Shown: in pieces, positions 6,506-41,715 of the stretch
Layout of the letters: each line of letters begins with the position of its first letter
Position numbering within the stretch: the first letter of the stretch is position 1
NCBI GenBank assembly: GCA_946965045.2
Contig: OX337228.1
Location: forward strand, 2,232,001 to 2,296,000
Origin: Epithemia pelagica
Lineage: Eukaryota; Protista; Bacillariophyta
Length of the DNA: 64,000 nucleotides
Direction: 5' to 3'
The notes under the pieces: model-generated
Database searches by the model: none
What the model saw: the letters and a program-made list of their open reading frames with translations, nothing else
What the model was told of the DNA's origin: nothing
Program-made: the position numbers and the translations under genes

Positions 6506-6689
6506 ATTCCCCACCGCTTTTTTTGCCATTAATCATGACGTGTCGGGACTGTTTTGAGTCATGGTCATAGTTTCATGAGAAATATTGCTCTTCCTGTTTC
6601 GACCGCGATCCGCGGTGGTTGTTCAGATCTTTGTCTTTGTTGGTGGGTTGTCGAAGCAATACGACGACGACAATACCAAAGGGATCAAG

Positions 6690-20830: not shown

Positions 20831-21577
20831 CTACCCGTTTTTCGCTTTCCTCGTCTTCTTCGAGGCTTGGACAAACGACTTGTAATAGCATCGAATACGG
20901 TCTCGAAGCGCCGCGAAGGTGAAATCCTCGAATACGTAGCCATGCGACGATGCCACCTCGAGAAGTCCCTGTGTCAGCGTGTTATTGTAGTGTTTTTGTT
21001 CCGCCGTGTAGTTCAGTTTGCTGGAGAATGTAAGGTATTCCTTTCGATGTTCTACTAAGTACCTCTCCAGTTCGGGATAGTTCTTCCACGGAAACTTTCG
21101 TTTGAGTACACCCTTGACTACTGCTCTGGACGTAGTTCCCACATGCTTGGCTGCATTGGGTCTTTTGGGAGTAGTATGAGTCGGAGAACTTGAGACGACT
21201 GCAGTAACGGCAGTCTTCCCATGTGCTAAGGTCCTTGGACTTAACGGAACTTCTGGTAATGGCAAAGTAGGTGGCATTTGGAGTTGGAGCGGTGTGGGGG
21301 AAGTGACATGTGGCATGGTAGGTGGCATTTGGAGCGGTGTGGGGGAAGGAATATCCTGGGAACATACTGAAACAGTCCTAGCACGAGAATTGGCAGAGCC
21401 GCCGATGATTTCAGGTGTCCTGGCATCGGTAACTTTTTCGCACCGACTCGAAGGATTGTCGGTTGTGAATGTGCCAGGTTCGTTCGCTTTCTTTTGGTTC
21501 ACCATGGGAATCTGTGCCTCTCTGTGAGATCGTGACTTTAGGCTAAGCAAGAGAAACGCAACATCTTGATTATCCAT
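20831..21577 (-). CDS. KFPWKNYPELE...LRDRIRCYYKS domain protein (paralog 2), intronless
   Basis: Same domain as 12410-14534 and 37640-38705. Likely ATG at 21577 (MDNQDVAFLLLSLK); earlier in-frame ATGs exist up to 21628. Confidence 0.85.
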   Translation of the reverse strand: MDNQDVAFLLLSLKSRSHREAQIPMVNQKKANEPGTFTTDNPSSRCEKVTDARTPEIIGGSANSRARTVSVCSQDIPSPTPLQMPPTMPHVTSPTPLQLQMPPTLPLPEVPLSPRTLAHGKTAVTAVVSSSPTHTTPKRPNAAKHVGTTSRAVVKGVLKRKFPWKNYPELERYLVEHRKEYLTFSSKLNYTAEQKHYNNTLTQGLLEVASSHGYVFEDFTFAALRDRIRCYYKSFVQASKKTRKAKNG

Positions 21578-21988
21578 GACATCATAAATGTTCTGCGAAT
21601 GGAGACAGCGATGCATACCAATATGCAAGGGACTTGTTTCGAAGGAGGGCTACTGGGGAAAGAAAGGATGGTGAGTTTCGCACGTCAGAGATGCGAATCG
21701 GCAAGAATCCAGAGTATAAAGGAATCGATTTTGTCTGCCATAAAAGTCTTACGTTCACTCGAGGCCCGAAGATCGAAGATATTGACGAAGCCGCCAACAA
21801 CAACACTTCTCCTCTACTGGTGGGAATTTTGAGATGGAGAAGAAATTCTTTTTGTGAGGCGAGGCGCATTCATTACATCACGCGCGTCTGGATATTCGCA
21901 CGAAAGTCGCGGTTGTCTTCCGCCACCAATCGGAAGTAGGGCATAAGTGACGTCATAGCTCAATACTTGGTCGTCCATCTCCACCAAG

Positions 21989-22723
21989 TACCCCCTCGCG
22001 GGTGTGGCTTTGAGGGTGTAATTTCGTGTAGCCACCCCCTTCCCTAAGAGCAAATAATAACCTATTTCTTGACGGTGGGCATATCTCCACCACGATAACA
22101 ACACGGGCCATGGTGTTGCACAGGTTGTTGTGCACCTATGTGGACTCTTGAAACCTGTCTTCCCAGTCATAGACCTCTAACCAATAGTGTAGAATGCATC
22201 TGCATCACCAAAGTTTAAAGGTTAAGGCTGTTATGCATCAGACTCATAGGCGCCATGCCTCGTGGCACAGGCACGGACGCGACGTCTCACAATTTCGAAC
22301 GAAGCAACTCAAAGGGACAATATGGCTCTTATCTTGCATTGTTTGAACACCTATTGATCTACAATACTCATAACAGTAGTAGTTGCGCGCTGCATTGATA
22401 GCAAAACATCAACTCTCATGTATTTTTATGCCATCATGGTCTCCTATTGTGCCTGTATTACGCGTCACTGTATTGGTCATTTCCTAGAGTGGCCCGAATC
22501 CACTGTGTCCCTCACAATGCACTGCCATGGTACCCAGATGAAGCATATGATGGTCGGATCATGATGGGGTGGCCATTGGAGGTCACCAGCAACAACAAAG
22601 TTTGATTGTCGTGTTGTTATCGTGGTGGAGGAAATGAGATATGCCTACCGTCAAGATCCAGCGAACAGAGAAGGGGGTGTTTCAACGAAATTACTCCCTC
22701 AAAAACACCCCCGCTGGGGGGTA
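21989..22723. mobile_element. Non-autonomous TIR element (MITE 1), 735 bp, 10-bp TSD, Mutator-like
   Basis: Ends TACCCCC...GGGGGGTA; ~115-bp imperfect TIRs; direct repeat ctccaccaag at 21979-21988 and 22724-22733. Confidence 0.8.
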
Positions 22724-23480
22724 CTCCACCAAGTTGTACGTGAAGAACACCCCCTAGCGGGGATGGCTAAGAGGGTTTAATTTCGTGTAGCCACCCCCAT
22801 CTCTCTGGTGTCCGGCCTAGTCGGCAGGCATATCTCACTTTCACAACCACGATAACAACACGACAATCAAACTTTGTTGTTGCTGGTGACCTCCTATGAT
22901 CACCCCATCATGATCCGACCATCGTGTGATTCATATTAGTACCATGGTAGTGCATTGTGAGCGGCACAGTGCATGAGGGTCACTCTAGGCAAGGATGAAA
23001 ATAGTGGCCCAGCATTATGGCACGACACGAGACCATGATGACCCCAAAAACACATGGGAATAGAGGTCCTGCTGTCGATACACTCCGTTACTACTGCTAT
23101 ATATTTTGTGTACCATTAGGTGTCGAAACAATGAATGATAGGAGCCATACATCCCTCTGAGATGCTTCGTTCGAAATGGTGAGGCGTTGCTTCCGTATGA
23201 CCGTGCCACGAGGCATGGTGCCTGTGAACCAGCTCCACAATAGACTCAACCTTCATATTTTGGCCATGCAGATGTATCCTACGCTATTGGTTAGAGGCCT
23301 ATGACTCGCCCGACAGGTACCAAGTGTCAAAATAGGTGCACAACAACAGGTGCAACAGCGAGGTCCGTGTTGTTGTCGCGATGGATGGAATGAGATATGC
23401 CTGCCAACTAGAAACAGGTTATTTTTCTACCAGAGAGATGGGGGTGTTTCAACGAAATTACAACCTCAAAAACACCCCCG

Positions 23481-24030
23481 CTAGTGCCGCGCCGGGTGAG
23501 GCGGCCAAAACCTCGAAAATAGCGGCCAAATGACCATGATGGACATCTAGCGTAACTCACTCAATATAGGACGCCCATGCCCCAATATCGAGCGACGTCT
23601 TCTTCAAACAATGCTCTCGGCCCCTGCGGGCCACTTTTGCTATAGCGGCCATGGTTATCGAGTTCTAACTCACCATTGTAGGGTCATTTTTTTTTCGTCC
23701 ACGTAATGGCCGCTAGATTGCCCTTTGGCCGCTACATTGATGGTACTATAAGTCGACCACTACGTGCCCTACCATCAAATGGTGCCTACGATGTGTCTAT
23801 CGTAGTGTAAGGAAGAGCACTTTCAGGTCATATGGGCTATCGGTGGGCGTGATAGCGCAAACAAACCCCTGCTCGATTTGGCTCGTTTTTGTTGGAACGA
23901 GATTTTCATCCGTAACTCGATGTACTGCCGAAGCTCCAATATGGTAGTTCTACAGTTCATACTTGAAGGGCTTTTACTTTAGGGTCTACCTTCGTGAAAC
24001 CAAGTATCATAACTATCGTAGGTGCCATGG
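23481..24030 (+). repeat. Unique outer part of left TIR
   Basis: Reverse complement of ~36478-37028; T-run is 9 nt on the left versus 10 nt on the right. Confidence 0.92.
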
Positions 24031-26343
24031 TTATCGCAAAATAGTCGTCCATCGATGAGGATTTTCATCTCTCGCGACACGAGCCACAATCGATCCTCAT
24101 CGTCAGTTTCCGCCACTCGTCTCGTTCAATCTTGATTCTCTGCCCCTCCTACTTTGTAGCATTTTAGTTTAGGACCTACTTGAGCGTAACGAGGTATCAG
24201 ATTGACCGTAGGCGCCATGGTCATTGAGAATGGGCCATCCATTGATGGAGGCATTTTTCTCGATGTAGCACGTCGCACACAACATTTCGAGACCGAAGGA
24301 CGTTGCTACTCGTCTCGTTCAATATTGACTCGCTTGCCTTCCTACTTTGTAGCATTTTAGTTTAGGACCTACTTGAGCGTAACGAGGTTTCAGATTGACC
24401 GTAGGCGCCATGGTCATTGAGAAGGTGCCATCCATTGATGGAGGCATTTTTCTCGATGTAGCACGTAGCACACAACATTTCGAGACCGAAGGACGTTGCT
24501 AATCGTCTCGTTCAATATTGACTCGCTTGCCTTCCTACTTTGTAGCATTTTAGTTTAGAACATACTTGAGCGTACCCAAGTCTCAGATTGACCGTAGGCG
24601 CCATGGTTATTGAGAATGGGCCATCCATTGATGGAGGCATTTTTCTCGATGTAGCACGTAGCACACAACATTTCGAGACCGAAGGACGTTGCTACTCGTC
24701 TCGTTCCATATTGACTCGCTTGCCTTCCTACTTTGTAGCATTTTAGTTTAGAACATACTTGAGCGTAACGAGGTATCAGATTGACCGTAGGCGCCATGGT
24801 CATTGAGAATGGGCCATCCATTGATGGAGGCATTTTTCTCGATGTAGCACGTAGCACACAACATTTCGAGACCGAAGGACGTTGCTACTCGTCTCGTTCC
24901 ATATTGACTCGCTGCCCCTCCTACTTTGTAGCATTTTAGTTTAGAACCGACTTGAGCGTAACGAGGTATCAGATTGACCGTAGGCGCCATGGTCATTGAG
25001 AAGGTGCCATCCATTGATGGAGGCATTTTTCCCGATGTAGCACGTAGCACACAACATTTCGAGACCGAAGGACGTTGCTACTCGTCTCGTTCAATCTTGA
25101 CTCTCTGCCCCTCCTACTTTGTAACATTTTAGTTTAGAACATACTTGAGCGTAACGAGGTATCAGATTGACCGTAGGCGCCATGGTCATTGAGAAGTCGC
25201 CATCCATTGATGGAGGCATTTTTCTCGATGTAGCACGTAGCACACAACATTTCGAGACCGAAGGACGTTGCTACTCGTCTCGTTCCATATTGACTCGCTT
25301 GCCTTCCTACTTTGTAGCATTTTAGTTTAGAACATACTTGAGCGTAACGAGGTATCAGATTGACCGTAGGCGCCATGGTCATTGAGAATGGGCCATCCAT
25401 TGATGGAGGCATTTTTCTCGATGTAGCACGTAGCACACAACATTTCGAGACCGAAGGACGTTGCTACTCGTCTCGTTCCATATTGACTCGCTGCCCCTCC
25501 TACTTTGTAGCATTTTAGTTTAGGACCGACTTGAGCGTAACGAGGTTTCAGATTGACCGTAGGCGCCATGGTCATTGAGAAGGTGCCATCCATTGATGGA
25601 GGCATTTTTCTCGATGTAGCACGTCGCACACAACATTTCGAGACCGAAGGACGTTGCTACTTGTCTCGTTCCATATTGACTCGCTTGCCTTCCTACTTTG
25701 TAGCATTTTAGTTTAGAACATACTTGAGCGTAACGAGGTATCAGATTGACCGTAGGCGCCATGGTCATTGAGAAGGTGCCATCCATTGATGGAGGCATTT
25801 TTCCCGATGTAGCACGTAGCACACAACATTTCGAGACCGAAGGACGTTGCTACTCGTCTCGTTCAAAATTGACTCGCTGCCCCTCCTGCTTTGTAGCATT
25901 TTAGTTTAGAACATACTTGAGCGTAACGAGGTATCAGATTGACCGTAGGCGCCATGGTCATTGAGAAGGTGCCATCCATTGATGGAGGCATTTTTCCCGA
26001 TGTAGCACGTAGCACACAACATTTCGAGACCGAAGGACGTTGCTACTCGTCTCGTTCAATCTTGACTCTCTGCCCCTCCTACTTTGTAGCATTTTAGTTT
26101 AGGACCTACTTGAGCGTAACGAGGTATCAGATTGACCGTAGGCGCCATGGTCATTGAGAAGGTGCCATCCATTGATGGAGGCATTTTTCTCGATGTAGCA
26201 CGTAGCACACAACATTTCGAGACCGAAGGACGTTGCTACTCGTCTCGTTCCATATTGACTCGCTTGCCTTCCTACTTTGTAGCATTTTAGTTTAGGACCT
26301 ACTTGAGCGTAACGAGGTATCAGATTGACCGTAGGTGCCATGG
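24030..26343. repeat. Left 193-bp tandem array, about 12 units
   Basis: Marker GCCATGG ends at 24220, 24413, 24606, 24799, 24992, 25185, 25378, 25571, 25764, 25957, 26150 and 26343 (exact 193-bp period). The outermost unit is degenerate. Confidence 0.97.
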
Positions 26344-26498
26344 TGTTTATTATCCTAGTAGCGACCATCAACGGAAGTGGTGTTTCCATTTGGTAGTTTG
26401 CCCTTTGAATCCGTAAGTTTCTATGACTTCTGAGTGATGATTCAAGGAAGTTGAAGAATAGTCAATGCTATTTTGATTTATATCTAGTTCAACGTTGT

Positions 26499-27020
26499 TT
26501 AGGACTGCATGTAGTTGTCGTAAAGATTCTCGCAGTCATCTTGTTGGGTCTCGGCAAAGTCGAAAGAAAGATCGCTATCAACAGCAGTTCCACGGGAGGA
26601 TACAGTCTGAGCACTACGCATCGAGATGCTGCTCATGATTGAGAAACGTGATGCAGGCTTTTCGATCTCCTCGTTGACTGGGCTAAGGTCGTCGGCAAAC
26701 TTGATTTTCAGGTGGCGTACTGGAGTCTTGTCTCCACCATTCAATCCTTCTTCCTCTAAATTGTCGCGAATCTTGGTGATTGATTCTTCAACGGTTCCAA
26801 GAACAACTACGGTTTTGTCCCCACATTCTTGATCCAATCCTTCCGAGAGCAATTCTGCCTTTCCAATGGTTGCTGTCTCTGCCTTGATTTTGGTTTTCTT
26901 GAGGGCACCTTGTTCAGTTGGGCGCACGGCAGATTTTGACACACTGGTTCGAACAACACTTGTGTGTGTGCGGTTTTGAAGGCGCGCACTAACACGGCGC
27001 TTGTCGATATAGAGTGACAT
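26499..27020 (-). CDS. Uncharacterised cargo ORF A, 173 aa
   Basis: ATG-initiated, charged and Ser-rich, ends ~150 bp from the left array. No family recognised. Confidence 0.45.
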   Translation of the reverse strand: MSLYIDKRRVSARLQNRTHTSVVRTSVSKSAVRPTEQGALKKTKIKAETATIGKAELLSEGLDQECGDKTVVVLGTVEESITKIRDNLEEEGLNGGDKTPVRHLKIKFADDLSPVNEEIEKPASRFSIMSSISMRSAQTVSSRGTAVDSDLSFDFAETQQDDCENLYDNYMQS

Positions 27021-27522
27021 TGTGTTGTTGCTTTTGTTGTTGTAGTTGCAGTTGTTCTTGATGTGTTTCTCGTTGACGCCGTTTTATGAAGGTCGCTGTC
27101 GGCTCTGTCTCTCGTTGATGTTTGATTGATGTGACGTCTCACCATAAAATCGGATCTCGTATGGGAAGCCGGCTTGCGGCTCAACGCTCAACGGAAGAAA
27201 ATTTTCTTAAGTAGCTTGTCACACTTTTGTAATTGCTCCCGAGTGGCAATAGTAGGAAGTCCCCAACCGTTCCCCCAAATCAAATGAAGTTTACTACATG
27301 TCGTCTGAGAAATCGATTTTACGACGTAAGAGCTTTTCCGAAGGAGAGGAGAGAATCGATAGGCCACCTGAATGAAGTGCTCACCTGAGGAAAGAGCTTT
27401 TGTTTGCAAATCAAAACGAGCGTAGAAGTAAGTGGTTCCGCGGCATCTAAATCATTGCTTACAATGGTGGCAATAACCTCGACTCATTGATTCTCTCTAT
27501 GCTTAGGACGGATCAAAGTACA

Positions 27523-28059
27523 ATGTCCGAACACGAGAATGAATCGCGCAATCGGATTCTCCTTCCTAACGGCTTTCACCTCGTACAAGATACGGGGAGC
27601 AACATCGAGCTCCAAGGAAGCCGCTTAACCATCTACGGTGAAGCGGGTGTGAACGTACACCTTCAAGACGCCACTCTCGGGGAGAAAGGAGAAAAGGGGA
27701 CACTTGTTGTGGATCGAGGCGTGATTCTTTTACAGCGCTCCAGGTATGGTACCAACGGTGGAATGCTATCAATTTGCGCGTTTGGCCGTGACAAGAAGGA
27801 CGATTCGATGCCTGACATCGTCATCCCAGTCGGATCGGTTCACAACAAAATTCGCTCCAAGAAGTTCCGTTCCAAAAATGGGTCCCTTGTCAAAGGAGAA
27901 CTCACCATTGAGACCTCTCACTCCTTGGATACCAAGGTGACAATGGGACCCATGATCATTACTGTGCGAATGAGTCTTACTGGGATGAATGCATTCATGT
28001 CGCTCTATGACAAAGCAACGGAGACGTGGCCCAACCAGGAAAGTGTTAAAATCACGTAA
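27523..28059 (+). CDS. Uncharacterised cargo ORF B, about 178 aa, predicted beta-rich
   Basis: ATG at 27523 (alternative ATG at 27499); globular-looking composition; convergent with the transposase. Confidence 0.6.
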   Translation: MSEHENESRNRILLPNGFHLVQDTGSNIELQGSRLTIYGEAGVNVHLQDATLGEKGEKGTLVVDRGVILLQRSRYGTNGGMLSICAFGRDKKDDSMPDIVIPVGSVHNKIRSKKFRSKNGSLVKGELTIETSHSLDTKVTMGPMIITVRMSLTGMNAFMSLYDKATETWPNQESVKIT

Positions 28060-28174
28060 GCGGGTAACAAATGATAGTTAGTATTCTTATTCATGGTGGT
28101 TTCCTAATTTCATAATATGTAGAGAGGCGCAAACATGTAGAATGAGTGTAGTTCTTGTGCACACAGAAGTTTCA

Positions 28175-31100
28175 TTAAGTCGCATTTCCTCCTTTCGCCG
28201 CAGCAAAGTTCATGGCGTGCTGCTCGATACAAGTTCGTTGTTTCCCATATCGAATGCCCACAGATGGCTTGCACACTGGTGTTCCCACGTAGGTTATCGA
28301 GCGCCAAGTCTTGGTGAACATGCGGCATTGTGGATGGCCACACATGGCTCGCGTGTCATTCTTACAAATAACACATTTACGCTTCATGCCTCTTTGGTCT
28401 GATGAAGAAACGTTGTCCTGTTCAACAACGCTGTGACAAACGACCGAATCAATTGTAAGCTCAGAAAATACGGACGCGGGTGATATACTGCTTGAACAGG
28501 TTTGGCCAACACTTGATGGCACAGTTACGGAGGCATCCGTACACACCGAAAGGTTGTTTGTCACTGGCAAGCTTTCAAGCACACCCGCTCTTCGTTCAAC
28601 TGAACTGCGTTCGGAATATGGATTGTTGATTAAGTCATAAGCCAGCATATCCGCAAAGTCGTGGATTGAGGTATTCAGGAAAGGTTCCACTTGCATGTGA
28701 AAACGCAGTGCAAGATAACAATCAACCACCGTCATACCGAAGACTGTCGTCACAATCCGAAACCACGGATTTTTAGTTAACCATAGTTCTTCGAGGCGTA
28801 GAAGACCCTGACGGATGTGATTGTGCCGGTCAATTGCATTGGCGTGCCGAAAGTATTTTGAAATACAGTCGGGACGCTCGACTCTCCGCTGCTTGATATT
28901 TCCAAACACATCTGTGAAGCGAGCAATGTATGGTGCGCCCGGTTGAGTATGCCCGGCATCTTTGGTCATGACAAAGAGAAGAACCTTCCTTGTATTGTAC
29001 TTGTACCCAACCGCTACGAGCTTCACTCCAGTGACAGGGGCAGTACACTCCATGACAAGGTAGGCTCCGGATGGAAAAGACTTCATCTGCTTCTCGATCT
29101 GTTTCTTGGGAAACCATGAGTGCGCTGTCTTCACAGCACCAATGAACTCATGTCCATCCGTGTTCAGCCCTTTCTCTTTGTCCACGTAGAACGGAAAGGA
29201 AGTGCGATTGCGTCGATCGTCCTGTTCCCTCCACGAACACTTGAGGCATTCAGCGACCTGGACACTTCCAAACCAGGAGTCGCCTAAATACAGGTAGCGC
29301 TTGGAGGCCTTTCCAGCTTCGTGGCGTGCGCTTGACAGCTGTCCACTGTATTGTGAACCTTCGACAAGCCGCAGTGTGCAGCCGCCCGATGGACCAGACT
29401 TCGCAACAAACTTCTTACGCCGCATTGGGACTCTTCCTTCTTGGATTTCAAGATGGGTCAGACACCCTGTCGTGGTGTCGGCGACCACCTGTGAATGAAA
29501 TAAGGTAGTAAGGTCAGACACATTAAGTCTTCAAAACATTGTCTGTCTGGTGTTAGCTTACCTTGAACTCCGTCCCAAGAGGTTTGGGCTTGCGGGCAAT
29601 AAATGAGATATGCGGCAACAAAGATTGCTTGGTCGTTCGTGGTCGAAACGCACTCATCGACTCGTCAAGCACTTGAACCACGGACGACGCAATTATTTGT
29701 CGGCGGTTCTCATTGAACCCATCAATCAGGGGACGGATTTCATTCCATTTGTCATTCGGATCCGTCCCCCTGAAGGCATGATAGAGATGCGTCTTAATGT
29801 CGTTGAACCTACTCTCTGCCATGATGTTGTCGCCTTTCGTTCCAAAATTTACATGTGGTGATAACCGACGAGTGCTAGGATCCTGGAAAAGAGCCTTTCC
29901 TCCTACACCAAGGGGACTTGCCGCGACGATAATCCCCCAAACTTTCCACCACTCGCCTTCCGTAACCATTCGAATTTTCTTCTTTTTATCACGCTTTTGA
30001 TTCAATCGATCTAAACTAAGATTAAGGACTCTCAACTGATTTTGCCAGTTCCCTGTACAGAGGCCGATTGCAAGAAAGTGAGACTGTTGAACTTCTGCGA
30101 TGTAGAAACAAAGAGTAGTGCTGACTTACCTGGCCAGAAGTGCATCAACAAGTCAAGAAATGGAAAGGAGTATTTTTCATTCTCGTGGCTTATTTCACTT
30201 TTACTCATCCTTTTGCCGAAGTTGTAGCCAACGATTGCATTCTTCTCATAGTCCGACACTGGATGATCCGGCGATGAATCCTCGACTATCTTCCACTCAA
30301 ATCTTCTTTTGTCCTCTTTCCTTCGTAGCTGTTGACCCGTTAAATCGGTCGTTGGCTCACTCTCTCCGTCAAAAAGCACAGTCCATAGGTTTCCTTTTGC
30401 CACTGGATTCTTCTTCCCGTCGACAACTGTTCCCCATTGAGCATTGTTGCCATTCTTGTGAACTCGATCTCCAATGTCGATTCCTTTTTTCTTGGGAGGC
30501 TTGACGACTACGGTCCAGTTGCTTTCAATAAGATGGTCTTTGGTAAGCTTGTATTGCTCCATTTTATGCCTGTGACGATCTTCGTCTCTTTCAACCAAAG
30601 CCCCGAAAGCCAATTGGCGTGCTTGTGCTTGTTCTTGTTCAGCTCCGTCATCCTCGTCATCATAGACAAGTTCCACGGGTACATCTTCTTCGAGTTCTTC
30701 ATCGGCAGCTGCATCTTCATCCTGATCTTCATGTTCGTTGTCACTATCTTCATCATCATTTTGCCTGGTCGTTGGTGGGTTGTTCTGATTGTTCGGAGGT
30801 GCATCTTGACCTTGAGCGTTGTCCAGGATCGCCGCTTGTGCCAAAACTTCAATTTCTTCATCGTCGCTTACATCTGTTAATATCACTCCACCAACAGTGC
30901 GAGGAGCCTCTGAAGTCGTTGTCGTTGCTGCGGTCGTTGCAGTGGTCGTTGCCGTGGTCGTTGCCGTGGTCGTTGGTGCAGCAGTCGTTGTCATTACCGA
31001 TTGCATTGGTGTGGTTGTTCCTGCTGTCGATGCCGCTGCCGTCGGCCTTGCTGTCGTCTCGACTGGGGTGTTCGTTGTCGTTGTCGCGCTCGTTGTCGCG

Positions 31101-31510
31101 CTCGTTGTCGCGCTCGTTGTCGCGCTCGTTGTCGTTGTCGTGGTTGCCGTTGGCATTGACGTGGATGTTGCTGTCCTCGATGCCGTTGTCATTGTCCTTG
31201 CTGCGGTTTCGGCTGGAACTGGAGTATTTGATACTGTGGTTGTTGTTGAGATCGTAGGTCGAGGTCCGGTTGCTGCAACTGGATCTGGTTGTCCAGGAAA
31301 ACCTTCATCTTTCTTGGGGAATCGAAGCTGTGGGGAAGAGCGTTCATTTCTTAGCTCTGTTAGATTTCCTCTTTCGTCCACTCCAGCGACCATCCACTTA
31401 TGAAATTCGACTGCTTCAACAATAATGCATGGGATGTCTCCACGCCTCATGAAACATCTCGATCCAATCCCCAAACCACATGATTTAGGCCTCGGCGGCG
31501 GTGGTTCCAT
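28175..31510 (-). CDS. piggyBac-like (DDE_Tnp_1_7-type) transposase, 3 exons, about 1,061 aa
   Basis: Exons 31510-30130, 30052-29562 and 29488-28175; GT-AG introns of 77 and 73 nt restore FWPG|NWQNQL and TEFK|VVAD. Catalytic triad VLDES, GDSWF, AIDRHN; RKPKPLG motif; C-terminal Cys/His finger CVIC...CGHPQC...C...C..H. Confidence 0.9.
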
Positions 31511-31948
31511 TGCTGTATCGTTCTCGTGCGTTTTGGTCTTCTCAAGTTTCTAAGAGGTTATTGAGAATTGCTGTTTGTGTGTCCAATCTCCATTAGCGGT
31601 CAAAAGCATCTTTTCGACTTGCAAGCAAGCACATGGTTGATTGTTGAATGAACTGTGGAACGATGTTGGAGGGAAGATGTAGTTTTTGTGGAGCAGTCGC
31701 TACAAAAGCGCGTGTTCCGCATGCCCGCCCGCCTTAATTAAACGACAAGAATGTTCTAAACATAATGAAATATGTAACAAAATTTAACGTTTTAACCGTA
31801 TTCCCGTTGAATCGAAAGATTTTTTCCAAGTGTGGTCTGATTTGTTTTTTTGTCAAGTGGTCTGCAGACCAGGCAATGACGAACGCTCTCTGTCTGAGAA
31901 ACGCTCGAAAACCCAAGACTCTCTGAGAAACCCCTACTCTACAAAAAG

Positions 31949-34729
31949 ATGGAGAGGAGAACAATGAAAACACGAAGTCAATCTGAATCGCGTCTTAAGG
32001 CGCTTGCTCATGTTGCAGTTGCTGCCTCGGAGGCGGAGTCGGAGCCACATTCACCATCACCTATGGCAGCAGCAGACGAAGCAACAATGGCAGCAACAGA
32101 AGAAGCGAGAGCAAGCCATCGGTTTCTTACAGACGAAGACCTCCATAAAGTCAACGAGAAAAAGCATGCAGACAGTCGTCGCGGCAAGCTAAAGGACGAC
32201 AATGCATACACGGACTCGGCGTCGGCTTTGAAACAGCGCCTCAGCGAGCAACGGAAAAAGGATTATGCGGAGGCTGTCGCTGCAGTAAAGAAAGTCAAGG
32301 CCTATGGACGGGATCCATGGGACAATTTCATCCGAGGACTGAAGTTTCTGTCCACTTCGATCAAGGATGGCACTGTGCTGATCAACGCATACGGAGTGTT
32401 TGTGGCAAAGAAGATTGGCGTCACATTTTCGGTGACAGATGCGCCCATTCGCAAATCAGGCACAGGCATCAAGAACTCTAATACGGCCCCCAAGAAAAAT
32501 GACTACGGACTGGAAGTTGGGGAAGTTGTGCCCAAGTCCGTTGGGATTGGGATCCCAACCAAGCAAACTCGAAACAACTCGTGCCTCAAGTTTCGACAGT
32601 TCAGCTTCTCCCTCAAGAATGATCCGATCTTCAAGATTATGCTGGGGACAAAACACATCTTCACAGTCAAGAAGTCGGGCCTCAAGGCCGAAGAGGGAAA
32701 AGAAGGCCCCGGGTTTGGTCTTTTTTCTGTACAAGAGCACAAAGTAGGTGAGGTGATTGGTGTGTATGCAGGGTTGGATATCACCTCTCGGACCGTCGGT
32801 CGGACCGAGTACGCAATTCAGTTTGGAGAGCACGGAGAACGCATCGTTCAAGCCGACAACGAGGATTTCTTTTTCATGGGGTTTCATTTGATGAATGATC
32901 CCCAGTATCACCTCTACGATACAGAAGAAGGACCTGACGAAGCACACCAGGACTACAACGTGCGTATCGACAAGAATCTGCTAGTTCGTGTGATCAAGGA
33001 GATCGCGGAGGGGGACGAGCTGTTTTTATTCTACAACCTTAGCTCGGACACCAAGACAATCGCAGCCTCAAAGGAAGGCGGTGAGGAGCCTGATGAGGAT
33101 GTGCAGAAGAAGCGAGGTCGATCCAGCCAGGATGATTCTCCGAAGAAGGTGAAGAAGATGAAGATGGGTGGTTCTGGTGGTAATGCTCCTGCTCCTGATG
33201 TTGCCATTCAACAGCACTACCAACCGCACGACCTTCAACTGCACCATCCTGTTCCCGCCGCTGCTGCTCCTGATGTTGCCATTCAACAGCACTACCAACC
33301 GCACGACCTTCAACTGCACCATCCTGTTCCCACTGCTGCTGTTCCTCATGATGTTGCCACTCAACAGCACTACCAACCGCACGACCTTCAACTGCACCAT
33401 CCTGTTCCCGCCGCTGCTGCTCCTGATGTTGCCATTCAACAGCACTACCAACCGCACGACCTTCAACTGCACCATCCTGTTCCTGTCGCTGCTGTTCCTC
33501 ATGATGTTGCCACTCAACAGCACCACTACAATTCTCCGCAAATACACCACCTTCAACCACACCATCATCCTCAGTACCACAGTCCACCATACCATCATCC
33601 TCCACATTCCCACTACACGCCCGGGCATTTCTATGATGAGCATCATCGGCCCCATGTCTTGGTGGCTCAGGGGCAGCTCCCTTATGAAGGATACGGGCAG
33701 GTTCAGCCACAACCAAGCATTCCATATGACGCCCCGATACTCAATCAAAACCCCAGTCCGGAGGACTCTCACCAGGTGGAAGCGGTTGAGGAGGAAGCAA
33801 ATCCGGCAGAGAAAGCAAAAGAACTGAATAAAAACTATGGCCACTTGTTGATCAATTATGAGGGTGATCCACGAGGACGTTTTTTGGTCGCTCCGACAGA
33901 GCTTCTTGGATTGTTGCGTGATGTCTGGTCTCTCGGAACGGAGAAGCATGGGGACGACAAGATTTCGAAGAGAATGCGGGGTGTGCAACAATACACCCCA
34001 CAAATCCAAATGCGCATGTTTGACGGTGAAGGATTAGTGGCACATGACGAATTCACACCCTGGGGGAAGAAGCAGGTAGCTGAAATTGTGGCAACATTCA
34101 AGAAGACTCTTGCTCAAGCCCTTGTGGACATGGAGTACGCAGAGGATGACTCCTTTGCTGAAGGTATCCAGATCCACCTGTCGCTCCTCAAGACCACATT
34201 TGAAAAGGTGCAAGAGCCACATCTGGATTTCAAATGGGATGTGGTCACGCCAAGTCCGGACGAGGAACAGGGTTCGACTGAACAGAAAGGGACACCCCAA
34301 GGCAACGTCAAGACTCGTGGAAAGGGACGAAAAAAGGCGCCGTTCCGAGAACGTGTCCCATTTGCTGTTTTTGTGCCCCTGACGGAGGACGGAATGACTT
34401 TAGAATTGTGGCGGCACCGCAAGGACCACAAGAAGAATAGGCATCAGTTGGGTGAGGTGGTCGACGTTCCCTATGGAACGTTCCTCATGATGCGAGGCGA
34501 TACTGTTCACGCCGGAGGCTTCTTGACCAGTGCCCAAGGCAATCCACGTGCCCATTTCTACATGTATCAAGGGCGTGATCAAACCATTCATCCATATCTT
34601 CCCAAAAACGAGTACCAGTTACCACCCTACTACAACTCAGAAGATCGTCTCGCAGCATATTACCGGCACAGTCAGCATGTCCACTATAAATCTCCAAAGA
34701 AAGTTCGTGGCGCACTTCTTCTAAAATAA
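31949..34729 (+). CDS. SET domain + Gln/His-repeat linker + 2OG-Fe(II) dioxygenase-like fusion protein, 926 aa
   Basis: SET motifs GFGLFS, GEVIGVYAG, HLMND and IKEIAEGDELFLFYN (~32704-33040). Dioxygenase motifs QEPHLD, FVPL, PYGTFLMMRGDTVHAGG and NPRAH (~34190-34560). Uninterrupted ORF. Confidence 0.85.
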   Translation: MERRTMKTRSQSESRLKALAHVAVAASEAESEPHSPSPMAAADEATMAATEEARASHRFLTDEDLHKVNEKKHADSRRGKLKDDNAYTDSASALKQRLSEQRKKDYAEAVAAVKKVKAYGRDPWDNFIRGLKFLSTSIKDGTVLINAYGVFVAKKIGVTFSVTDAPIRKSGTGIKNSNTAPKKNDYGLEVGEVVPKSVGIGIPTKQTRNNSCLKFRQFSFSLKNDPIFKIMLGTKHIFTVKKSGLKAEEGKEGPGFGLFSVQEHKVGEVIGVYAGLDITSRTVGRTEYAIQFGEHGERIVQADNEDFFFMGFHLMNDPQYHLYDTEEGPDEAHQDYNVRIDKNLLVRVIKEIAEGDELFLFYNLSSDTKTIAASKEGGEEPDEDVQKKRGRSSQDDSPKKVKKMKMGGSGGNAPAPDVAIQQHYQPHDLQLHHPVPAAAAPDVAIQQHYQPHDLQLHHPVPTAAVPHDVATQQHYQPHDLQLHHPVPAAAAPDVAIQQHYQPHDLQLHHPVPVAAVPHDVATQQHHYNSPQIHHLQPHHHPQYHSPPYHHPPHSHYTPGHFYDEHHRPHVLVAQGQLPYEGYGQVQPQPSIPYDAPILNQNPSPEDSHQVEAVEEEANPAEKAKELNKNYGHLLINYEGDPRGRFLVAPTELLGLLRDVWSLGTEKHGDDKISKRMRGVQQYTPQIQMRMFDGEGLVAHDEFTPWGKKQVAEIVATFKKTLAQALVDMEYAEDDSFAEGIQIHLSLLKTTFEKVQEPHLDFKWDVVTPSPDEEQGSTEQKGTPQGNVKTRGKGRKKAPFRERVPFAVFVPLTEDGMTLELWRHRKDHKKNRHQLGEVVDVPYGTFLMMRGDTVHAGGFLTSAQGNPRAHFYMYQGRDQTIHPYLPKNEYQLPPYYNSEDRLAAYYRHSQHVHYKSPKKVRGALLLK
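33191..33524 (+). repeat. Coding minisatellite, 75/78-bp units, about 4.4 copies
   Basis: Units APDVAIQQHYQPHDLQLHHPVPAAA (25 aa) and VPHDVATQQHYQPHDLQLHHPVPAAA (26 aa), all in frame. Confidence 0.95.
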
Positions 34730-34869
34730 AAAAACTATAAGTTTATGCTTGCGTGATAGACTTTCGTCTGTTGTTGTAATCCATGACCTCCCCACTTCCA
34801 TTTCTCGTCTCAATCGTCCCCTGTCTCCGACATCTTCAGACGACACTTAAAAATTGATTTGAAGCTTGC

Positions 34870-36478
34870 CCAATCTCGTGTGCTTTGTGCTACATCGGGA
34901 AAAATGCCTCCATCAATGGATGGCCTATTCTCAATGACCATGGCGCCTACGGTCAATCTGAGACCTGGGTACACTCAGGGAGATCCTAAACTAAAATGCT
35001 ACAAAGTAGGAGGGGCAGAGAGTCAATATGGAACGAGACGAGTAGCAACGTCCTTCGGTCTCGAAATGTTGTGTGCTACGTGCTACATCGAGAAAAATGC
35101 CTCCATCAATGGATGGCCCATTCTCAATGACCATGGCGCCTACGGTCAATCTGAGACTTGGGTACGCTCAAGTAGGTTCTAACCTAAAATGCTACAAAGT
35201 AGAAGGCAAGCGAGTCAATATTGAACGAGACGAGTAGCAACGTCCTTCGGTCTCGAAATGTTGTGTGCTACGTGCTACATCGGGAAAAATGCCTCCATCA
35301 ATGGATGGCCCATTCTCAATGACCATGGCGCCTACGGTCAATCCGACACTTGGGTACGCTCAAGTAGGTCCTAAACTAAAATGCTACAAAGTAGGAAGGC
35401 AAGCGAGTCAATATTGAACGAGACGAGTAGCAACGTCCTTCGGTCTCGAAATGTTGTGTGCTACGTGCTACATCGAGAAAAATGCCTCCATCAATGGATG
35501 GCCCATTCTCAATGACCATGGCGCCTACGGTCAATCTGAGACTTGGGTACGCTCAAGTAGGTTCTAACCTAAAATGCTACAAAGTAGGAAGGCAAGCGAG
35601 TCAATATTGAACGAGACGATTAGCAACGTCCTTCGGTCTCGAAATGTTGTGTGCTACGTGCTACATCGGGAAAAATGCCTCCATCAATGGATGGCCCATT
35701 CTCAATAACCATGGCGCCTACGGTCAATCTGATACCTCGTTACGCTCAAGTAGGTTCTAAACTAAAATGCTACAAAGTAGGAAGGCAAGCGAGTCAATAT
35801 TGAACAAGACGAGTAGCAACGTCCTTCGGTCTCGAAATGTTGTGTGCTACGTGCTACATCGAGAAAAATGCCTCCATCAATGGATGGCCCATTCTCAATG
35901 ACCATGGCGCCTACGGTCAATCTGATACCTCGTTACGCTCAAGTAGGTCCTAAACTAAAATGCTACAAAGTAGGAAGGCAAGCGAGTCAATATTGAACGA
36001 GACGAGTAGCAACGTCCTTCGGTCTCGAAATGTTGTGTGCTACGTGCTACATCGAGAAAAATGCCTCCATCAATGGATGGCCCATTCTCAATGACCATGG
36101 CGCCTACGGTCAATCTGAGACTTGGGTACGCTCAAGTAGGTCCTAAACTAAAATGCTACAAAGTAGGAAGGCAAGCGAGTCAATATTGAACGAGACGAGT
36201 AGCAACGTCCTTCGGTCTCGAAATGTTGTGTGCTACGTGCTACATCGAGAAAAATGTCTACATCAATGGATGGCCCATTCTCAATGACCATGGCACCTAC
36301 GGTCAATCTGATACCTCGTTACGCTCAAGTAGGTCCTAAACTAAAATGCTACAAAGTAGGAGGGGCAGAGAATCAAGATTGAACGAGACGAGTAGCGGAA
36401 ACTGACGATGAGGATCGATTGTGGTTCGTGTCGCGAGAGATGAAAATCCTCATCGATGGACGACTATTTTGCGATAAC
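34870..36478. repeat. Right 193-bp tandem array, about 8 units, inverted relative to the left array
   Basis: Marker CCATGG starts at 34938, 35131, 35323, 35516, 35709, 35902, 36095 and 36288, plus a degenerate copy at 36478. Confidence 0.97.
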
Positions 36479-37028
36479 CATGGCACCTACGATAGTTATG
36501 ATACTTGGTTTCACGAAGGTAGACCCTAAAGTAAAAGCCCTTCAAGTATGAACTGTAGAACTACCATATTGGAGCTTCGGCAGTACATCGAGTTACGGAT
36601 GAAAATCTCGTTCCAACAAAAACGAGCCAAATCGAGCAGGGGTTTGTTTGCGCTATCACGCCCACCGATAGCCCATATGACCTGAAAGTGCTCTTCCTTA
36701 CACTACGATAGACACATCGTAGGCACCATTTGATGGTAGGGCACGTAGTGGTCGACTTATAGTACCATCAATGTAGCGGCCAAAGGGCAATCTAGCGGCC
36801 ATTACGTGGACGAAAAAAAAAATGACCCTACAATGGTGAGTTAGAACTCGATAACCATGGCCGCTATAGCAAAAGTGGCCCGCAGGGGCCGAGAGCATTG
36901 TTTGAAGAAGACGTCGCTCGATATTGGGGCATGGGCGTCCTATATTGAGTGAGTTACGCTAGATGTCCATCATGGTCATTTGGCCGCTATTTTCGAGGTT
37001 TTGGCCGCCTCACCCGGCGCGGCACTAG
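36478..37028 (-). repeat. Unique outer part of right TIR
   Basis: Reverse complement of 23481-24030; ends GGCGCGGCACTAG. Confidence 0.92.
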
Positions 37029-37639
37029 GGGGTGACGTGAAGAAAGAGAAGTGCGAATCACTCCCCAGCGATCATCAGACAAATGAAATTTCCCACTTCC
37101 CGAAGCTCGAGTCCAAGTACTTTTTGACACTGTGTAAACCCAACACCTCGAAAACGGACCGCGATCGAACACGCAGACGCGTGCGACCGAACACATGTTC
37201 CACTGGAGGGGCATAAGTAGGGCTTTTGTAACTCCCAGGCTCTATAGACTCGAAACATATGCCTCTTGACGGATGTAAGACACACTCTAATGTTTGAATT
37301 CCTAACGCGTTTTCCCTTGAGCGAATGGTTTCACTGATTGACCAATCAGAAGGCTTAGCGTGGGTTCTCTACCCAGAAAAACCTGTATTCTCGTTGTGAC
37401 AAGCAACAACCCATCGGTGCCAATCAAAAGGTTGCGCACTTCACCATGCACCTTCGTTGAATTCCTACCGAGAAAAGACATGCCAATAAGCTGTGGGCTT
37501 GACACTTGATCCATTAATCGACTTCGTTTCTCTTTGGCAGTCAACGATACCATACGATAGAAACATCCGAAGCTGCTTTACCATCCCACCTTTCCAATCG
37601 TCGCTCTCCTTGATCTCTCCAAGACGGCCTTAAGACAAT

Positions 37640-38705
37640 ATGAATCCCCGCTTGAAAAGCATCGCTCACCTCCCATCAGTTGAGTCTGAAGATGATTCCG
37701 CTTTCCACGTTTGCATTCGGTCCCCTCCAAGCCGCCACGCATCTCCAACTTCCTCGGAATCTTCAGTTGAACACGAAGCGGCCCTTCTGCTATCTATATC
37801 AAGCATATGCGACCGTGAAGTGAAAGACAGGGGATTCGACGCCATCTTTGATGATATGCCTCGGTTTCCTTCACTCGTTTCAGGTTCGCGGTCGGAAGAT
37901 CAATCTCCCCTGAAGCCACGACCGGAACTAGTTCAGCAAGAAAAAACAGACCTTTGTGCTCTCCGCGCTCGAACAGTCTCTATTGATTCTCCAAGACTTA
38001 CAGCCATGGAAGTTGACCGCACGGCTTCTCCAGTTCTGCTTCCCGCCGCGAGAGCCACGGCTCCGGAACCGGTGATAGTTTCTCCGCTGACCCCTCATGC
38101 CACGGTGCGGCGTCTGCCTGCTCGTAAGCCCTCTATTCGCTTAGCCAGACAAAGCCGTCGTGAGTCAATAGTTGAGGAACCCGAAGAGAAGAATGAGGCA
38201 AAGAGCGCGAATCTTGCTCCGAAAAGTGTGAAGGGAAGAACGCTCCAAGCCGCTCCTCCGAAAGGGGTTCCGATCAAGAAGATTGGCCGGAAGAAGTTCT
38301 CTTGGAAATGTTATCCAGAGGTGAGTGTATCGGGTTCCTCAATGAATCCCTTTCTGTTGAATTCGTCAAGACTCACGCTTTATTCATGTGCAGTTGGAAC
38401 AATTCCTGATTACGAACCGGGAAGAGTATCTTAGGCATTCAGCACTGAACTATACGATTCAACAGAAGCAGTACAACAATCGTTTGACTGATGAGCTTCT
38501 TGAGTTGGCAACTCGATATGGATATATCTTCGACACCCAGGAATTCTCTTTCGTCACTGTACGTGACCGCATTCGGTGCTACTACAAGTCCTATGTTCAA
38601 TCAGCCAAGAAAAGAGGCGTTCTTATGGGCTATGCCGCAAGAAAAGCTGGGCTTCTGAAGGAAGACAGTATTGCTGGATCCGCCAAGCTTGTTACGTCTT
38701 TATGA
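37640..38705 (+). CDS. KFSWKCYPELE...VRDRIRCYYKS domain protein (paralog 3), 2 exons
   Basis: Exons 37640-38320 and 38394-38705; GTGAGT...CAG intron of 73 nt at the same YPE|LE position as paralog 1; 331 codons. Confidence 0.88.
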
Positions 38706-39572
38706 GGTTCTACTCAAGATGCAGGGGACGCCATCTCTTCCATTTTCCACGGGAAAGAAGCTATTACGATTGTTCTTGTATCATCCCAAATCGGCGAGGT
38801 TTACGGTTCACATCCTGTCTGCTTATATATGACGTATGGGTGGAAAAAACACTTAAGAACTTCTACATGCCATGAATACCGCGAGTATTACGGAGTTTGG
38901 TACCATTATGAATAAGCTACATAGATGCATTCGTTCATTTTATGTGTGATGTTTACAACAGTTGCCAACAACCAGTGGATACAAAATTAATGTGCCGAAG
39001 AGAGGGGGTGAAGTCATTTCTAAGTTTGTTGGAGAGAAGAACTACTTTTGCATACTCCCGTTCTTCAATCGGTAGGTTCTTCACGTTCCACAGAAGAGAA
39101 AGGAATAGTATTGTGTCCAAAGTCAAAAAGCTTTCTACCTTCCGCGCAATGCGAATCGATCGTCACGGAATCCTTTTGACTGCGGTATTACTGCTCTGGA
39201 GAGACAACTTCTTCTCTCGAGAGCGCTCAATGATGCCCTACATCTTCATCCTTCCTTGCTGTAGGACAAGACAAGCGTATCAAATTTACTTCAGACACAA
39301 CAAAGCATGAAGTTCGCTTTTGATTGGTGGTGACACGAGCCAACACAAGCTACAATACCCGTTTAAAACGGCGATCCCCAACGAAAGCCAATCCCCAGCG
39401 ATTCCCCCGCACGCGTGCGCTTGTGTCGGTGTGCGTTCACTTATCCTTATCCCTACTTGTAGTTTAATCATGTTCTGGTCTCACCCAACAAGGCCCATAT
39501 TCGCAACCAGTGTTGTGGCAAGTGAGTTGTGCATGAAGTATTGAGTCCAAGTTGAACGAAACAAACAAGTCA

Positions 39573-41603
39573 ATGGAGCAACCAGCAGGCTCGAATGCCT
39601 TGTGGCAGAAATTTGCCGCAGACTCTCAGCAGCAACATGGCTCTTCAGCGTTCACAAGCCGTGAAGCTACCAATGGGTTGATGAACCCTCCCATTCGACG
39701 GCAACCAAGCACTCTCTCCAACAGCAACAATATGTTGCATCGAGGACTGAGTAATAGTCATCGAATGGCGTCGTCTCACCAGCTTTCCAGCAGTAGCTCA
39801 CTTTCAAGCACATCAAGACAAAGACTCCAGAAAACAGAAAGTAGTGGCGGTGGCATGTCGAACGCAGTTTTCCCCATGAGTCAGCCCAATCGAACCAGTT
39901 CTGGGATTCTTGGCAACAACGCTGTATTTAGCACATCGCAAAGTCGCATACAGCAAGGTGTTTCTGACGTGAGTTCCAATAGCTCAATGGAAAACTCTGC
40001 TTTCTCTTCCGTCTCGAACCCGCAAACAAAAAACAGCTTAATGAGTGGGTTCCTCAGTCAAAGAAAACTTGGGACTGGCTTGTCGTCCAACAGAAATTCG
40101 TCACAAGTTCTATCTATGGAAAACAGTGACAGTCCATTGGTGGCCGCCCTTTCTCGAAAAATGAAATCAAGCTCTTCAATCAATCAGCAGCAGCAACAAC
40201 AACAAGGGACTGGTCCTTCCAGCTCCGGTTTCCCCATATCCCAACTTTTGGCGGCCAAGAAGCCACATTCCAGCGCGTCTCTTTCTTTGACTGGAAACCG
40301 TCCCTCTGTTGGAAATTTTGCCCCGAACATGTCACCTCCAGCTTTACCTGGCTCAAGCTCAAATAGAACAACCTCCATTTTGAATGCTAGACTCTCCGTT
40401 TCCGCAGATAGCTCAAGGTCCGGCAGTTTGAGGAACTCTGTGTCCATGTCCGCTATTGGGAAAGGTGGAAGCTTGGGCTCAAGCTCGTCTATTAGTAGCA
40501 GATTGTTTCCAGGTGGCGTTCCGTCTCCTTCGACACGTCAAAATATTTCCATAAATCAGTCCTCTTCAATGGGACAAAACCAAACTTTTAATCCTTCTCT
40601 GACATCGAGACTTTCTCAATCTACCAGCAACTTGGGAACTGTCATGAGATCACCATCGCAAGGATCAAATATGACAGCTGTCCAGTCGAATATGGCCATG
40701 CTTTTGAATCGAAATCAACAAAAACCTACCAGCGACTTAGCTTCAATTCTTCGAAAGCAACAACCACAGGCTGTCCAGAGTCGTAAACGTTCTTTGTCGC
40801 AAACGAATCTAGTCACAAATCCGACGGTCTCCAAAACGTCTCGATTTTTGACAAGTGCAACCGCCAGACGGAACAGCGCTGTAATGAGTTCGGATTCCCT
40901 TCTTCACAATAGCTGCAAGCTCTACCCGAAGACCCTTGTTGTATTGGAGTCGGCTCTGGCCTTTGATCCAGAGGCCATCCGAAGATCTGTCCCGTTGATC
41001 GTTGGCAGTCCTTCTGAAAGCAACAAAGAGGGAGAGGACACGAAAGAGCAGGAACAAGGGATGACGCCCCACTTTCCGGCTGCTGCGACCGCAGGGCTAC
41101 GGGACGCCGTGCCGTCCAGCTTCAAATCATCTGCTTGGTATTCGTATCCTTTCAACATTGCTATGAAACATGAAGCGGGATTAGATGTTTTGCAGTTCCT
41201 CGCAAAAGAAGGGCCTGATGTTCTAGCTAAACCTGATGGAGACGAAGAAGCGGCGTCGTTGGGTATTGCCTTAGGGATGGAAAAACCATCGTTGGATATT
41301 ATCCGGCTGATTTTATCCAACAACCCAGCGACAAAGAAGGTCTCCGACCGGCAGTCCAATTTCCCCCTTCATATTGCTGTTCGTGCTCCTCTAGGATCTG
41401 ATGCCCAACGATTGGAATTGGTTCGGTTGATCTACTTTGCGCATCCTTCGGCTATCAAAGAGAAGAATTTCCGTGGAGAAACTCCTTTGGATATCGCTGT
41501 TAGAAGTCCATTTTCGTGCGACGACGTTATTGACTTTCTGCAACAAAACAGCGCACCGGACGAAGAAAGTGAATTGATTGATGCACCAACACCTTTCTCA
41601 TGA
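39573..41603 (+). CDS. Ser/Gln-rich protein with C-terminal ankyrin-like repeats
   Basis: Low-complexity N-terminus; SNFPLHIAV and RGETPLDIAV repeats. First ATG at 39573. Confidence 0.75.
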   Translation: MEQPAGSNALWQKFAADSQQQHGSSAFTSREATNGLMNPPIRRQPSTLSNSNNMLHRGLSNSHRMASSHQLSSSSSLSSTSRQRLQKTESSGGGMSNAVFPMSQPNRTSSGILGNNAVFSTSQSRIQQGVSDVSSNSSMENSAFSSVSNPQTKNSLMSGFLSQRKLGTGLSSNRNSSQVLSMENSDSPLVAALSRKMKSSSSINQQQQQQQGTGPSSSGFPISQLLAAKKPHSSASLSLTGNRPSVGNFAPNMSPPALPGSSSNRTTSILNARLSVSADSSRSGSLRNSVSMSAIGKGGSLGSSSSISSRLFPGGVPSPSTRQNISINQSSSMGQNQTFNPSLTSRLSQSTSNLGTVMRSPSQGSNMTAVQSNMAMLLNRNQQKPTSDLASILRKQQPQAVQSRKRSLSQTNLVTNPTVSKTSRFLTSATARRNSAVMSSDSLLHNSCKLYPKTLVVLESALAFDPEAIRRSVPLIVGSPSESNKEGEDTKEQEQGMTPHFPAAATAGLRDAVPSSFKSSAWYSYPFNIAMKHEAGLDVLQFLAKEGPDVLAKPDGDEEAASLGIALGMEKPSLDIIRLILSNNPATKKVSDRQSNFPLHIAVRAPLGSDAQRLELVRLIYFAHPSAIKEKNFRGETPLDIAVRSPFSCDDVIDFLQQNSAPDEESELIDAPTPFS

Positions 41604-41715
41604 CAGGAAGATTCCCACTCTCTACAAATATGTGCATTAAATAGACGTTAAATGTTCGAATACCCTAAGGATAAACGATTCAAAAGATAGGGATGAATGA
41701 ATGAAAGTGGAAGTT

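Follow-up and report, generated by a model that had tools for sequence, protein, structure and literature searches.

A 13.5-kb predicted piggyBac-superfamily transposon with CTAG-type target sites and accessory genes in the diatom Epithemia pelagica

In a survey of 157 piggyBac-like elements, the target was TTAA, with exceptions that were sporadic and probably mutational, and a conserved C started the terminal inverted repeats (TIRs) (PMC5381638; also PMC2872659). The TIRs of canonical piggyBac are 12–19 bp long and C-initiated (CCYT) (PMC5381638, PMC2872659). Here, we analyzed an element in a stretch of 64,000 nucleotides from the diatom Epithemia pelagica (assembly GCA_946965045.2, contig OX337228.1, positions 2,232,001 to 2,296,000), hereafter called the window. 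Positions 23485–37024 of the window very probably constitute an intact, autonomous cut-and-paste transposon of a piggyBac-superfamily lineage, with a CTAG-type target and with accessory genes that serve the element. Its predicted transposase resembles those of T. ni piggyBac and Myotis piggyBat in a homologous DDE_Tnp_1_7 core, three Asp residues, and a C-terminal Cys-rich domain. Further shared features are a 4-bp duplication with a central TA and an empty site compatible with seamless excision. The element differs from the canonical ones in its target, which is CTAG, CTAT, or ATAG and not TTAA, in its TIRs, which start with TGCC and measure ~630 bp plus arrays of 0.6–2.7 kb, in having four genes rather than one, and in a transposase with an N-terminal extension of ~460 amino acids (aa) and two introns.

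Giant elements and enzyme-carrying transposons have been described before. Teratorn of medaka is a giant piggyBac fused to a herpesvirus and measures 180 kb (PMC5601938). It demonstrates that very large multi-gene elements can be mobilized by piggyBac-superfamily transposases; the cargo of Teratorn, however, is a whole viral genome, whereas the element described here carries three small cellular-type genes that are conserved in sister families, and it uses another target site. According to PMC12730594, HarbingerS and MuDR families of oomycetes (Phytophthora) carry SET genes. These are likewise stramenopile DNA transposons with a SET-domain protein beside the transposase, but the transposase belongs to another superfamily, and a dioxygenase fusion is not reported for them. 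Fungal DNA transposons (KDZ, hAT, Harbinger, EnSpm, Helitron, and others) carry TET/JBP genes, and both the SET genes of Phytophthora and the fungal TET/JBP genes have been interpreted as anti-silencing devices (PMC12730594). A captured 2-oxoglutarate (2OG)-Fe(II) dioxygenase is common to the fungal elements and the one in the window. The predicted enzyme studied here is, however, not TET/JBP by fold or sequence: its nearest relatives are AsqJ, FtmOx1, and KanJ together with prolyl hydroxylases, and it is fused to a probable SET domain. Among the TET/JBP carriers in PMC12730594, piggyBac is mentioned nowhere. A literature search, with Repbase and Dfam outside its scope, returned no paper on a CTAG-targeting or a SET/dioxygenase-carrying piggyBac. 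A preliminary description of the stretch, made from its letters alone, had put the locus forward as a candidate for a new system. This was overstated, as giant piggyBac cargo carriers (Teratorn, PMC5601938) as well as SET- and dioxygenase-carrying transposons (PMC12730594) have already been described.

Boundaries, copies, and an unoccupied site

The preliminary description had delimited a 13.5-kb unit at 23481–37028 with near-identical inverted arms of 2.9 and 2.1 kb. Both the unit and its arms are real: the arms span 23481–26344 (2.86 kb) and 34872–37028 (2.16 kb), and their longest gap-free pairing covers 1,620 nt at 96%. The outer four bases on each side, however, are a target-site duplication and lie outside the element, so that the element proper comprises 23485–37024 (13,540 bp). 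The left CTAG (23481–23484) was recognized by the identical four bases that flank the right end and by an empty site with a single CTAG; the right CTAG (37025–37028) was recognized by comparison of the copy flanks and by the same empty site. The non-array part of the left TIR (23485–24111, plus strand) starts with TGCCGCGCC and was defined by the terminus common to all copies. Its counterpart in the right TIR (36394–37024, minus strand) ends with GGCGCGGCA and was defined by comparison of the arms and the copies. Each arm thus has a non-array terminal part of ~627–631 bp, and not the ~550 bp of unique sequence given previously. Aligned over ~627 bp, the left and right terminal parts show a single substitution and an indel in a T-run (4 gap positions). 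The inner ~260 bp of the left part correspond to a degenerate array unit (23956–24213) that is 74–77% identical to the array unit proper. For the terminal 32-mer, the 64-kb window contains exactly two occurrences, against none expected. All copies end in TGCCGCGCC...GGCGCGGCA, and the element ends begin with TGCC; TTAA was looked for at the ends and is absent. An Rfam search of 21000–39000 revealed no RNA families or other RNA genes.

Further copies were retrieved from the public assembly ENA ERZ21939226, which was reached via protein look-up. Five copies (L002–L006) are located on five other contigs with unrelated flanks, resulting in six copies with that of the window. Their identity over the 8.5-kb interior amounts to 98.6–99.6%. 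The five complete copies are flanked by perfect 4-bp direct repeats, which read CTAG in the window, L003, and L006, CTAT in L002, and ATAG in L005. In L004, the outer 346 bp of one arm are missing, and the other end is flanked by CTAC. All duplications comprise 4 bp with a central TA. A 2-bp TA duplication plus one extra TIR base was considered as well and rejected, because the CTAT and ATAG copies have outer bases that repeat directly and are not complementary. No gene is broken in the window and in L006; each of the other four copies has one or more broken genes. The interior is covered colinearly by Logan contigs from three runs.

The same assembly contains an empty site. Contig L010 matches the window at 22809–23484 with 99.85% identity and at 37025–48434 (11.4 kb) with 99.97% identity; a single CTAG (L010 9386–9389) is shared by the two matches, with no extra bases. 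Since this site is unoccupied in L010, the window insertion is polymorphic, and a misassembly of the element as a whole is ruled out. We conclude that the window carries either a new insertion or that the element was excised seamlessly from the other haplotype or assembly. Six near-identical copies, clean 4-bp duplications, and the allelic empty site bear out the earlier suggestion of recent mobility. The preliminary description had also proposed a search for other copies of the termini and their flanks, and this search yielded the five copies with different flanks and matching 4-bp duplications.

The surroundings of the insertion show some peculiarities of their own. Leftward of 22809, where the homology between the window and L010 stops, L010 contains Copia-type (RVT_2) retrotransposon sequence (1740–8713); this stop represents a second structural polymorphism, less than 1 kb from the empty site. 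The insertion itself lies in a small foldback-type repeat (window 21989–23484), composed of two inverted arms of ~740 bp that are 77% identical, and the junction reads CACCCCCG-CTAG-GGGGTG. The foldback-type repeat occurs again on contig L001 (271–1788), with the arms permuted in order. In the small sample of flanks, CTAG may be the center of a longer target that is roughly palindromic: it is preceded by ctac in L003, L008, and L009 and followed by gtgg or gggg in the copies L003 and L007 and in the window.

Inward of the terminal parts, both arms consist of tandem arrays. As assembled, the left array (24112–26344, plus strand) holds 11.6 units of 193 bp, detected by Tandem Repeats Finder (TRF) with a period of 193 and 95% matches. 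The right array (34872–36396, minus strand), detected by inverted-repeat and tandem-repeat searches, holds 7.9 units in inverted orientation relative to the left one. Across the copies, the number of units in an arm ranges from 3 to 14. The 193-bp arrays described earlier for both arms were thus recovered at 95% matching. The attribute "satellite-like" holds for their tandem arrangement; the unit was, however, not found outside element arms in ~280 kb examined, and an independent satellite was rejected on this basis. Every 193-bp unit contains a single copy of the 13-nt motif GCCATGGTYATYG, and every terminal part contains two copies, always in the same orientation relative to the end. For the window family, it was counted 23 times, in the arms only, against 0.31 expected. 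Concerted evolution of the two arms was not clearly evident: left and right arms within a copy differ by 1–5 substitutions, and so do arms of different copies other than L005. The overall between-copy mean is 5.2 substitutions. Altogether, the arms differ by 1–10 substitutions per ~630 bp.

Foldback and subterminal-repeat elements such as Drosophila FB and CACTA/En-Spm also have long inverted arms made of tandem repeats whose copy number varies. The repeat unit of FB measures tens of bp. The units here are 188–193 bp long, and the transposase superfamily differs. By analogy with FB and CACTA, the repeated arm motifs plausibly serve as multiple transposase-binding sites.

Transposase, accessory genes, and sister families

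The interior had been described as four open reading frames (ORFs). Four coding units are indeed present and intact in the window; the transposase, however, is not a single ORF but consists of three minus-strand ORFs that are joined by two GT..AG introns, giving a coding sequence of 3,186 nt and a predicted protein of 1,061 aa. Exon 1 (30130–31510), identified as an ORF with its translation, contains no Pfam domain. It encodes the ~460-aa N-terminal extension, made up of a conserved N-terminal block, a Thr/Ala-rich tract, and an acidic tract, and its residues 7–119 and 395–460 are conserved in the sister families treated below. Tandem repeats of 12 and 6 bp (30917–31141) encode the Thr/Ala-rich tract, with long spurious ORFs opposite. 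Intron 1 (30053–30129, 77 nt) and intron 2 (29489–29561, 73 nt) were deduced by reading the sequence; their positions and canonical splice sites are kept in two sister families (L007 and L008), and the intron sequences have diverged.

Exon 2 (29562–30052, minus strand) encodes the DDE_Tnp_1_7 core and matched Pfam PF13843 with E = 1.5e-8 (34.8 bits, cut-off 22.4). It also provides the candidate for the first catalytic Asp, D590 (LDESM), which aligns with the lDEG motif of piggyBat. Exon 3 (28175–29488, minus strand), assigned by a family profile and its invariant Asp residues, comprises D694, D844, and the C-terminal Cys-rich domain. It has 55 homologues, many of which are annotated with PF13843. 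D694 (GDSWFGS) and D844, corresponding to D70 and D220 of the exon 3 piece, are invariant across 24 homologues. The profile of these 24 homologues matched piggyBat (9c0f) with E = 5.7e-5 and was colinear with it at the first Asp, the second Asp (D-aromatic-aromatic-x-S), and the Cys-rich tail. D694 aligns with the mDNYYNS motif, and the Cys pattern from ~C996 aligns with the Cys-rich tail of piggyBat; D844 was placed as the putative third Asp by its invariance among homologues. D590, D694, and D844 are thus candidates for the catalytic triad. Single-sequence phmmer searches of exons 2 and 3 against the PDB matched no piggyBac structure, which indicates that the lineage is strongly diverged. 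As judged from the sequence comparisons, the transposase belongs to the piggyBac superfamily. The earlier piggyBac-like classification is supported by the Pfam DDE_Tnp_1_7 match, the family profile against piggyBat, the 4-bp duplications, and the empty site. Other piggyBac-type transposases are encoded in the same genome: the L002 contig (ctg1336l) carries a different one, P0010, with 47% identity, and further families (P0006–P0009) show ~40% identity.

We compared the element with two sister families, one represented by L007 and the other by L008 and L009. Their transposases are 62–70% identical to that of the window. Both families contain ORF A, ORF B, the transposase, and the SET-dioxygenase gene in the order and orientation of the window. 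Their subterminal arrays are built of units of 188–190 bp that are homologous to the 193-bp unit, with a mean column identity of 60% and invariant blocks across the three families. Every readable end of the sister families is flanked by CTAG, so that three families are consistently found at CTAG-type sites. All four genes gave pairwise ratios of nonsynonymous to synonymous substitution rates (dN/dS) of 0.17–0.34, values that point to purifying selection but are rough because dS between the families is near saturation (0.7–1.8). The same genes, gene order, and arrays across the families indicate that genes and arrays are maintained parts of the element and not accidents of one copy. The preliminary description had suggested examining whether cargo and transposase co-occur; they do so in every copy and in both sister families.

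The largest accessory gene (31949–34729, plus strand) encodes a protein of 926 aa with a SET-like region (aa ~255–363), a Q/H/P linker, and a domain with dioxygenase fold (aa ~616–885), as assigned by Pfam, AlphaFold2, and fold searches. The linker is encoded by a 75-bp coding tandem repeat (33185–33523, 4.4 copies) that specifies a 25-aa Q/H/P-rich unit; the repeat shows indels between the element copies and accounts for 51 gap positions in L005. The SET-like region spans the whole Pfam PF00856 profile with E = 0.003 (18.4 bits, cut-off 22.4). The GxG and terminal ...FYN motifs of SET domains were recognized on reading the sequence, and a language-model (Atlas) search points likewise to SET families. 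A paralogue, P0002, is 45% identical to the window protein over 346 N-terminal residues and has a SET match above the Pfam cut-off (E = 7.6e-6) at the equivalent position. Thus, the cargo protein probably contains a SET domain; in the sister families, the protein is 52–55% identical.

P0002 (L001 10001–12904) is a full-length SET-dioxygenase paralogue of 967 aa with 42–45% identity. Up to a distance of 10 kb from it, L001 is devoid of piggyBac transposase, ORF A, ORF B, and arm-repeat sequences, and L001 was therefore rejected as a further copy of the element. P0002 may represent the host source of the cargo or be part of another element.

The family of the dioxygenase domain comprises at least 222 members, including a hypothetical protein of Epithemia clementina (KAL7564762.1) and MMETSP transcripts; the nearest named homologue comes from the diatom Epithemia. 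The homologues (P0075–P0223, of window 33626–34726) share an invariant QxPHxD...H motif, and one member has a Med26/TFIIS-type domain. A Pfam scan of 44 homologues gave no family hit for the C-terminal ~310 residues, TET_JBP and JmjC included. An AlphaFold2 model based on the alignment of 44 sequences reached a predicted local distance difference test score (pLDDT) of 83 and a predicted template modeling score (pTM) of 0.79. In searches with Foldseek (probability 1.0) and VIA-align (Z scores of up to 11.9 across ~196 residues), the leading PDB and Swiss-Prot matches were exclusively 2OG-Fe(II) oxygenases, namely AsqJ, OkaE, AusE, FtmOx1, KanJ, and SnoN, followed by prolyl hydroxylases. The 44 homologues show no variation at H758-x-D760 and H854 and almost none at R867 (conserved in ≥90%). 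The VHAGG...PR segment aligns with its FtmOx1 counterpart at a sub-threshold E of 0.13; in FtmOx1, the distal iron-binding His lies in this segment. The C-terminal domain is therefore confidently modeled as a 2OG-Fe(II) dioxygenase fold of the PhyH/AsqJ/P4H-like type. A TET/JBP identity was rejected in view of the missing Pfam hit in the 44 homologues and the absence of TET/JBP structures among the best fold matches listed. Likewise, a JmjC identity was rejected because there was no JmjC Pfam hit and the best folds were PhyH-like enzymes and prolyl hydroxylases. The earlier designation as a SET-dioxygenase is thus right at the level of the fold; the dioxygenase, however, is PhyH/P4H-like and of no known demethylase type.

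The two remaining genes have no recognizable family, and neither ORF A nor ORF B gave a match above noise in Pfam or Atlas. ORF A (26499–27020, minus strand) encodes a protein of 173 aa that is probably largely disordered. Its tblastn match is split in L004 and unbroken in the other five copies, and ORF A is 54–64% identical in the sister families with a dN/dS of about 0.3. ORF B (27523–28059, plus strand) encodes a beta-rich protein of 178 aa, counted from the first ATG. It is intact in all six copies and 70–77% identical in the sister families (dN/dS 0.17–0.21), and homologues were found in this genome only. The AlphaFold2 model of ORF B, based on an alignment of eight sequences, had a pLDDT of 36 and was unusable.

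Proposed mechanism and alternative explanations

The proposed mechanism starts from the transposase, which would bind the repeated sites in the arms, with the 13-nt GCCATGGTYATYG motif as candidate site. According to established piggyBac biochemistry (PMC7351741), on which this step rests, excision would follow the hairpin route and leave complementary 4-nt overhangs. Such overhangs could re-anneal seamlessly whatever the tetranucleotide, so that seamless repair of the donor site would be possible. Integration would remain staggered by 4 bp and centered on TA, with a changed preference for the outer bases; the observed target set (CTAG, CTAT/ATAG, and CTAC) would take the place of TTAA, and reinsertion would occur at NTAN sites with CTAG preferred. 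ORF A, ORF B, and the SET-dioxygenase would be retained because they raise the success of the element itself. With regard to the fusion protein, we lean slightly toward a modification of chromatin proteins at or around the element, which would counter silencing or assist transposition, and ORF A and ORF B perhaps act together with it on chromatin proteins. A more far-reaching version is doubtful. It assumes a self-contained chromatin system, in which the SET-dioxygenase, possibly together with ORF A and ORF B, acts on nucleosomes over the ~190-bp arm arrays and sets up a local chromatin state that shields the element from silencing or licenses its excision, and in which the transposase represents a piggyBac lineage whose target has naturally changed from TTAA to CTAG.

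Several observations weigh against the interpretation as an autonomous piggyBac-type transposon with serving genes. Two classical piggyBac hallmarks, the TTAA target and short C-initiated TIRs (PMC5381638, PMC2872659), are absent. The empty allele is compatible with seamless excision as well as with a new insertion and cannot separate the two. As to the gene models, the sole runs with the sequence (X1–X3) are DNA-like, with long colinear contigs and no splice joints. The near-saturated dS limits the selection analysis, as stated above. Concerning the cargo protein, the SET match of the window (18.4 bits) falls below the Pfam cut-off of 22.4 bits, and the usual NH(S/C) motif of SET domains reads ND. 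Moreover, the nearest dioxygenase folds act on small molecules or prolines, and not on methyl-lysine or DNA, so that a chromatin role is suggested only by the fusion with SET.

The locus could also be a genuine piggyBac-type transposon whose three extra genes are passive passengers, captured from the host without a role in the life cycle of the element. The P0002 paralogue, 42–45% identical and with no piggyBac transposase within 10 kb, fits host-gene capture, and four of the six copies have one or more broken genes. We nevertheless consider this improbable. The three genes keep their order and orientation in families whose transposases are just 62–70% identical, their dN/dS is as low as that of the transposase, and ORF B is found nowhere but in these elements; passive cargo would be expected to decay or vanish over a dS of about 1. 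Very unlikely is a SET-dioxygenase that chiefly benefits the host, that is, a domesticated or co-opted chromatin enzyme inside a transposon shell. Such a role would agree with the position of P0002 outside any recognized element, and with the at least 222 dioxygenase-domain homologues that are widespread and expressed in marine protists (MMETSP), the Epithemia protein among them. In L002, L003, and L004, and thus in at least three of the six copies, the cargo gene is, however, interrupted by stops or frameshifts, as in neutrally decaying copies, and it shows frameshift and indel differences in L005; according to the insertion polymorphism, it moves with the element.

Finally, kilobase-long inverted arms of tandem repeats are prone to assembly errors, and the number of array units differs between the arms, as might be seen if the locus were an assembly artefact or a local inverted duplication and not a mobile element. 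We give this explanation practically no credence, as an independent assembly contains the precise empty site and five copies that end identically, lie in different flanks, and have matching 4-bp duplications, and the Logan contigs of the three runs are colinear over the interior. An intact, autonomous transposon of the piggyBac superfamily with genes that serve it thus remains by far the best reading of the locus.

Implications for piggyBac and for transposon-encoded enzymes

The requirement for TTAA is seen as a drawback of piggyBac, which is a major tool for genome engineering (PMC13461360). In large mining efforts, elements are filtered for TTAA (PMC13461360), so that a CTAG lineage would be discarded. 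A recently active, natural CTAG clade of 11–14-kb elements with an intact transposase would offer a direct way to learn how the choice of target is encoded. Three accessory genes appear to be kept under selection across diverged families, and the predicted SET-dioxygenase fusion draws on an unannotated marine-protist family of at least 222 proteins. With such a fusion, the occurrence of transposon-encoded epigenetic enzymes would extend to diatom-type algae and to piggyBac.

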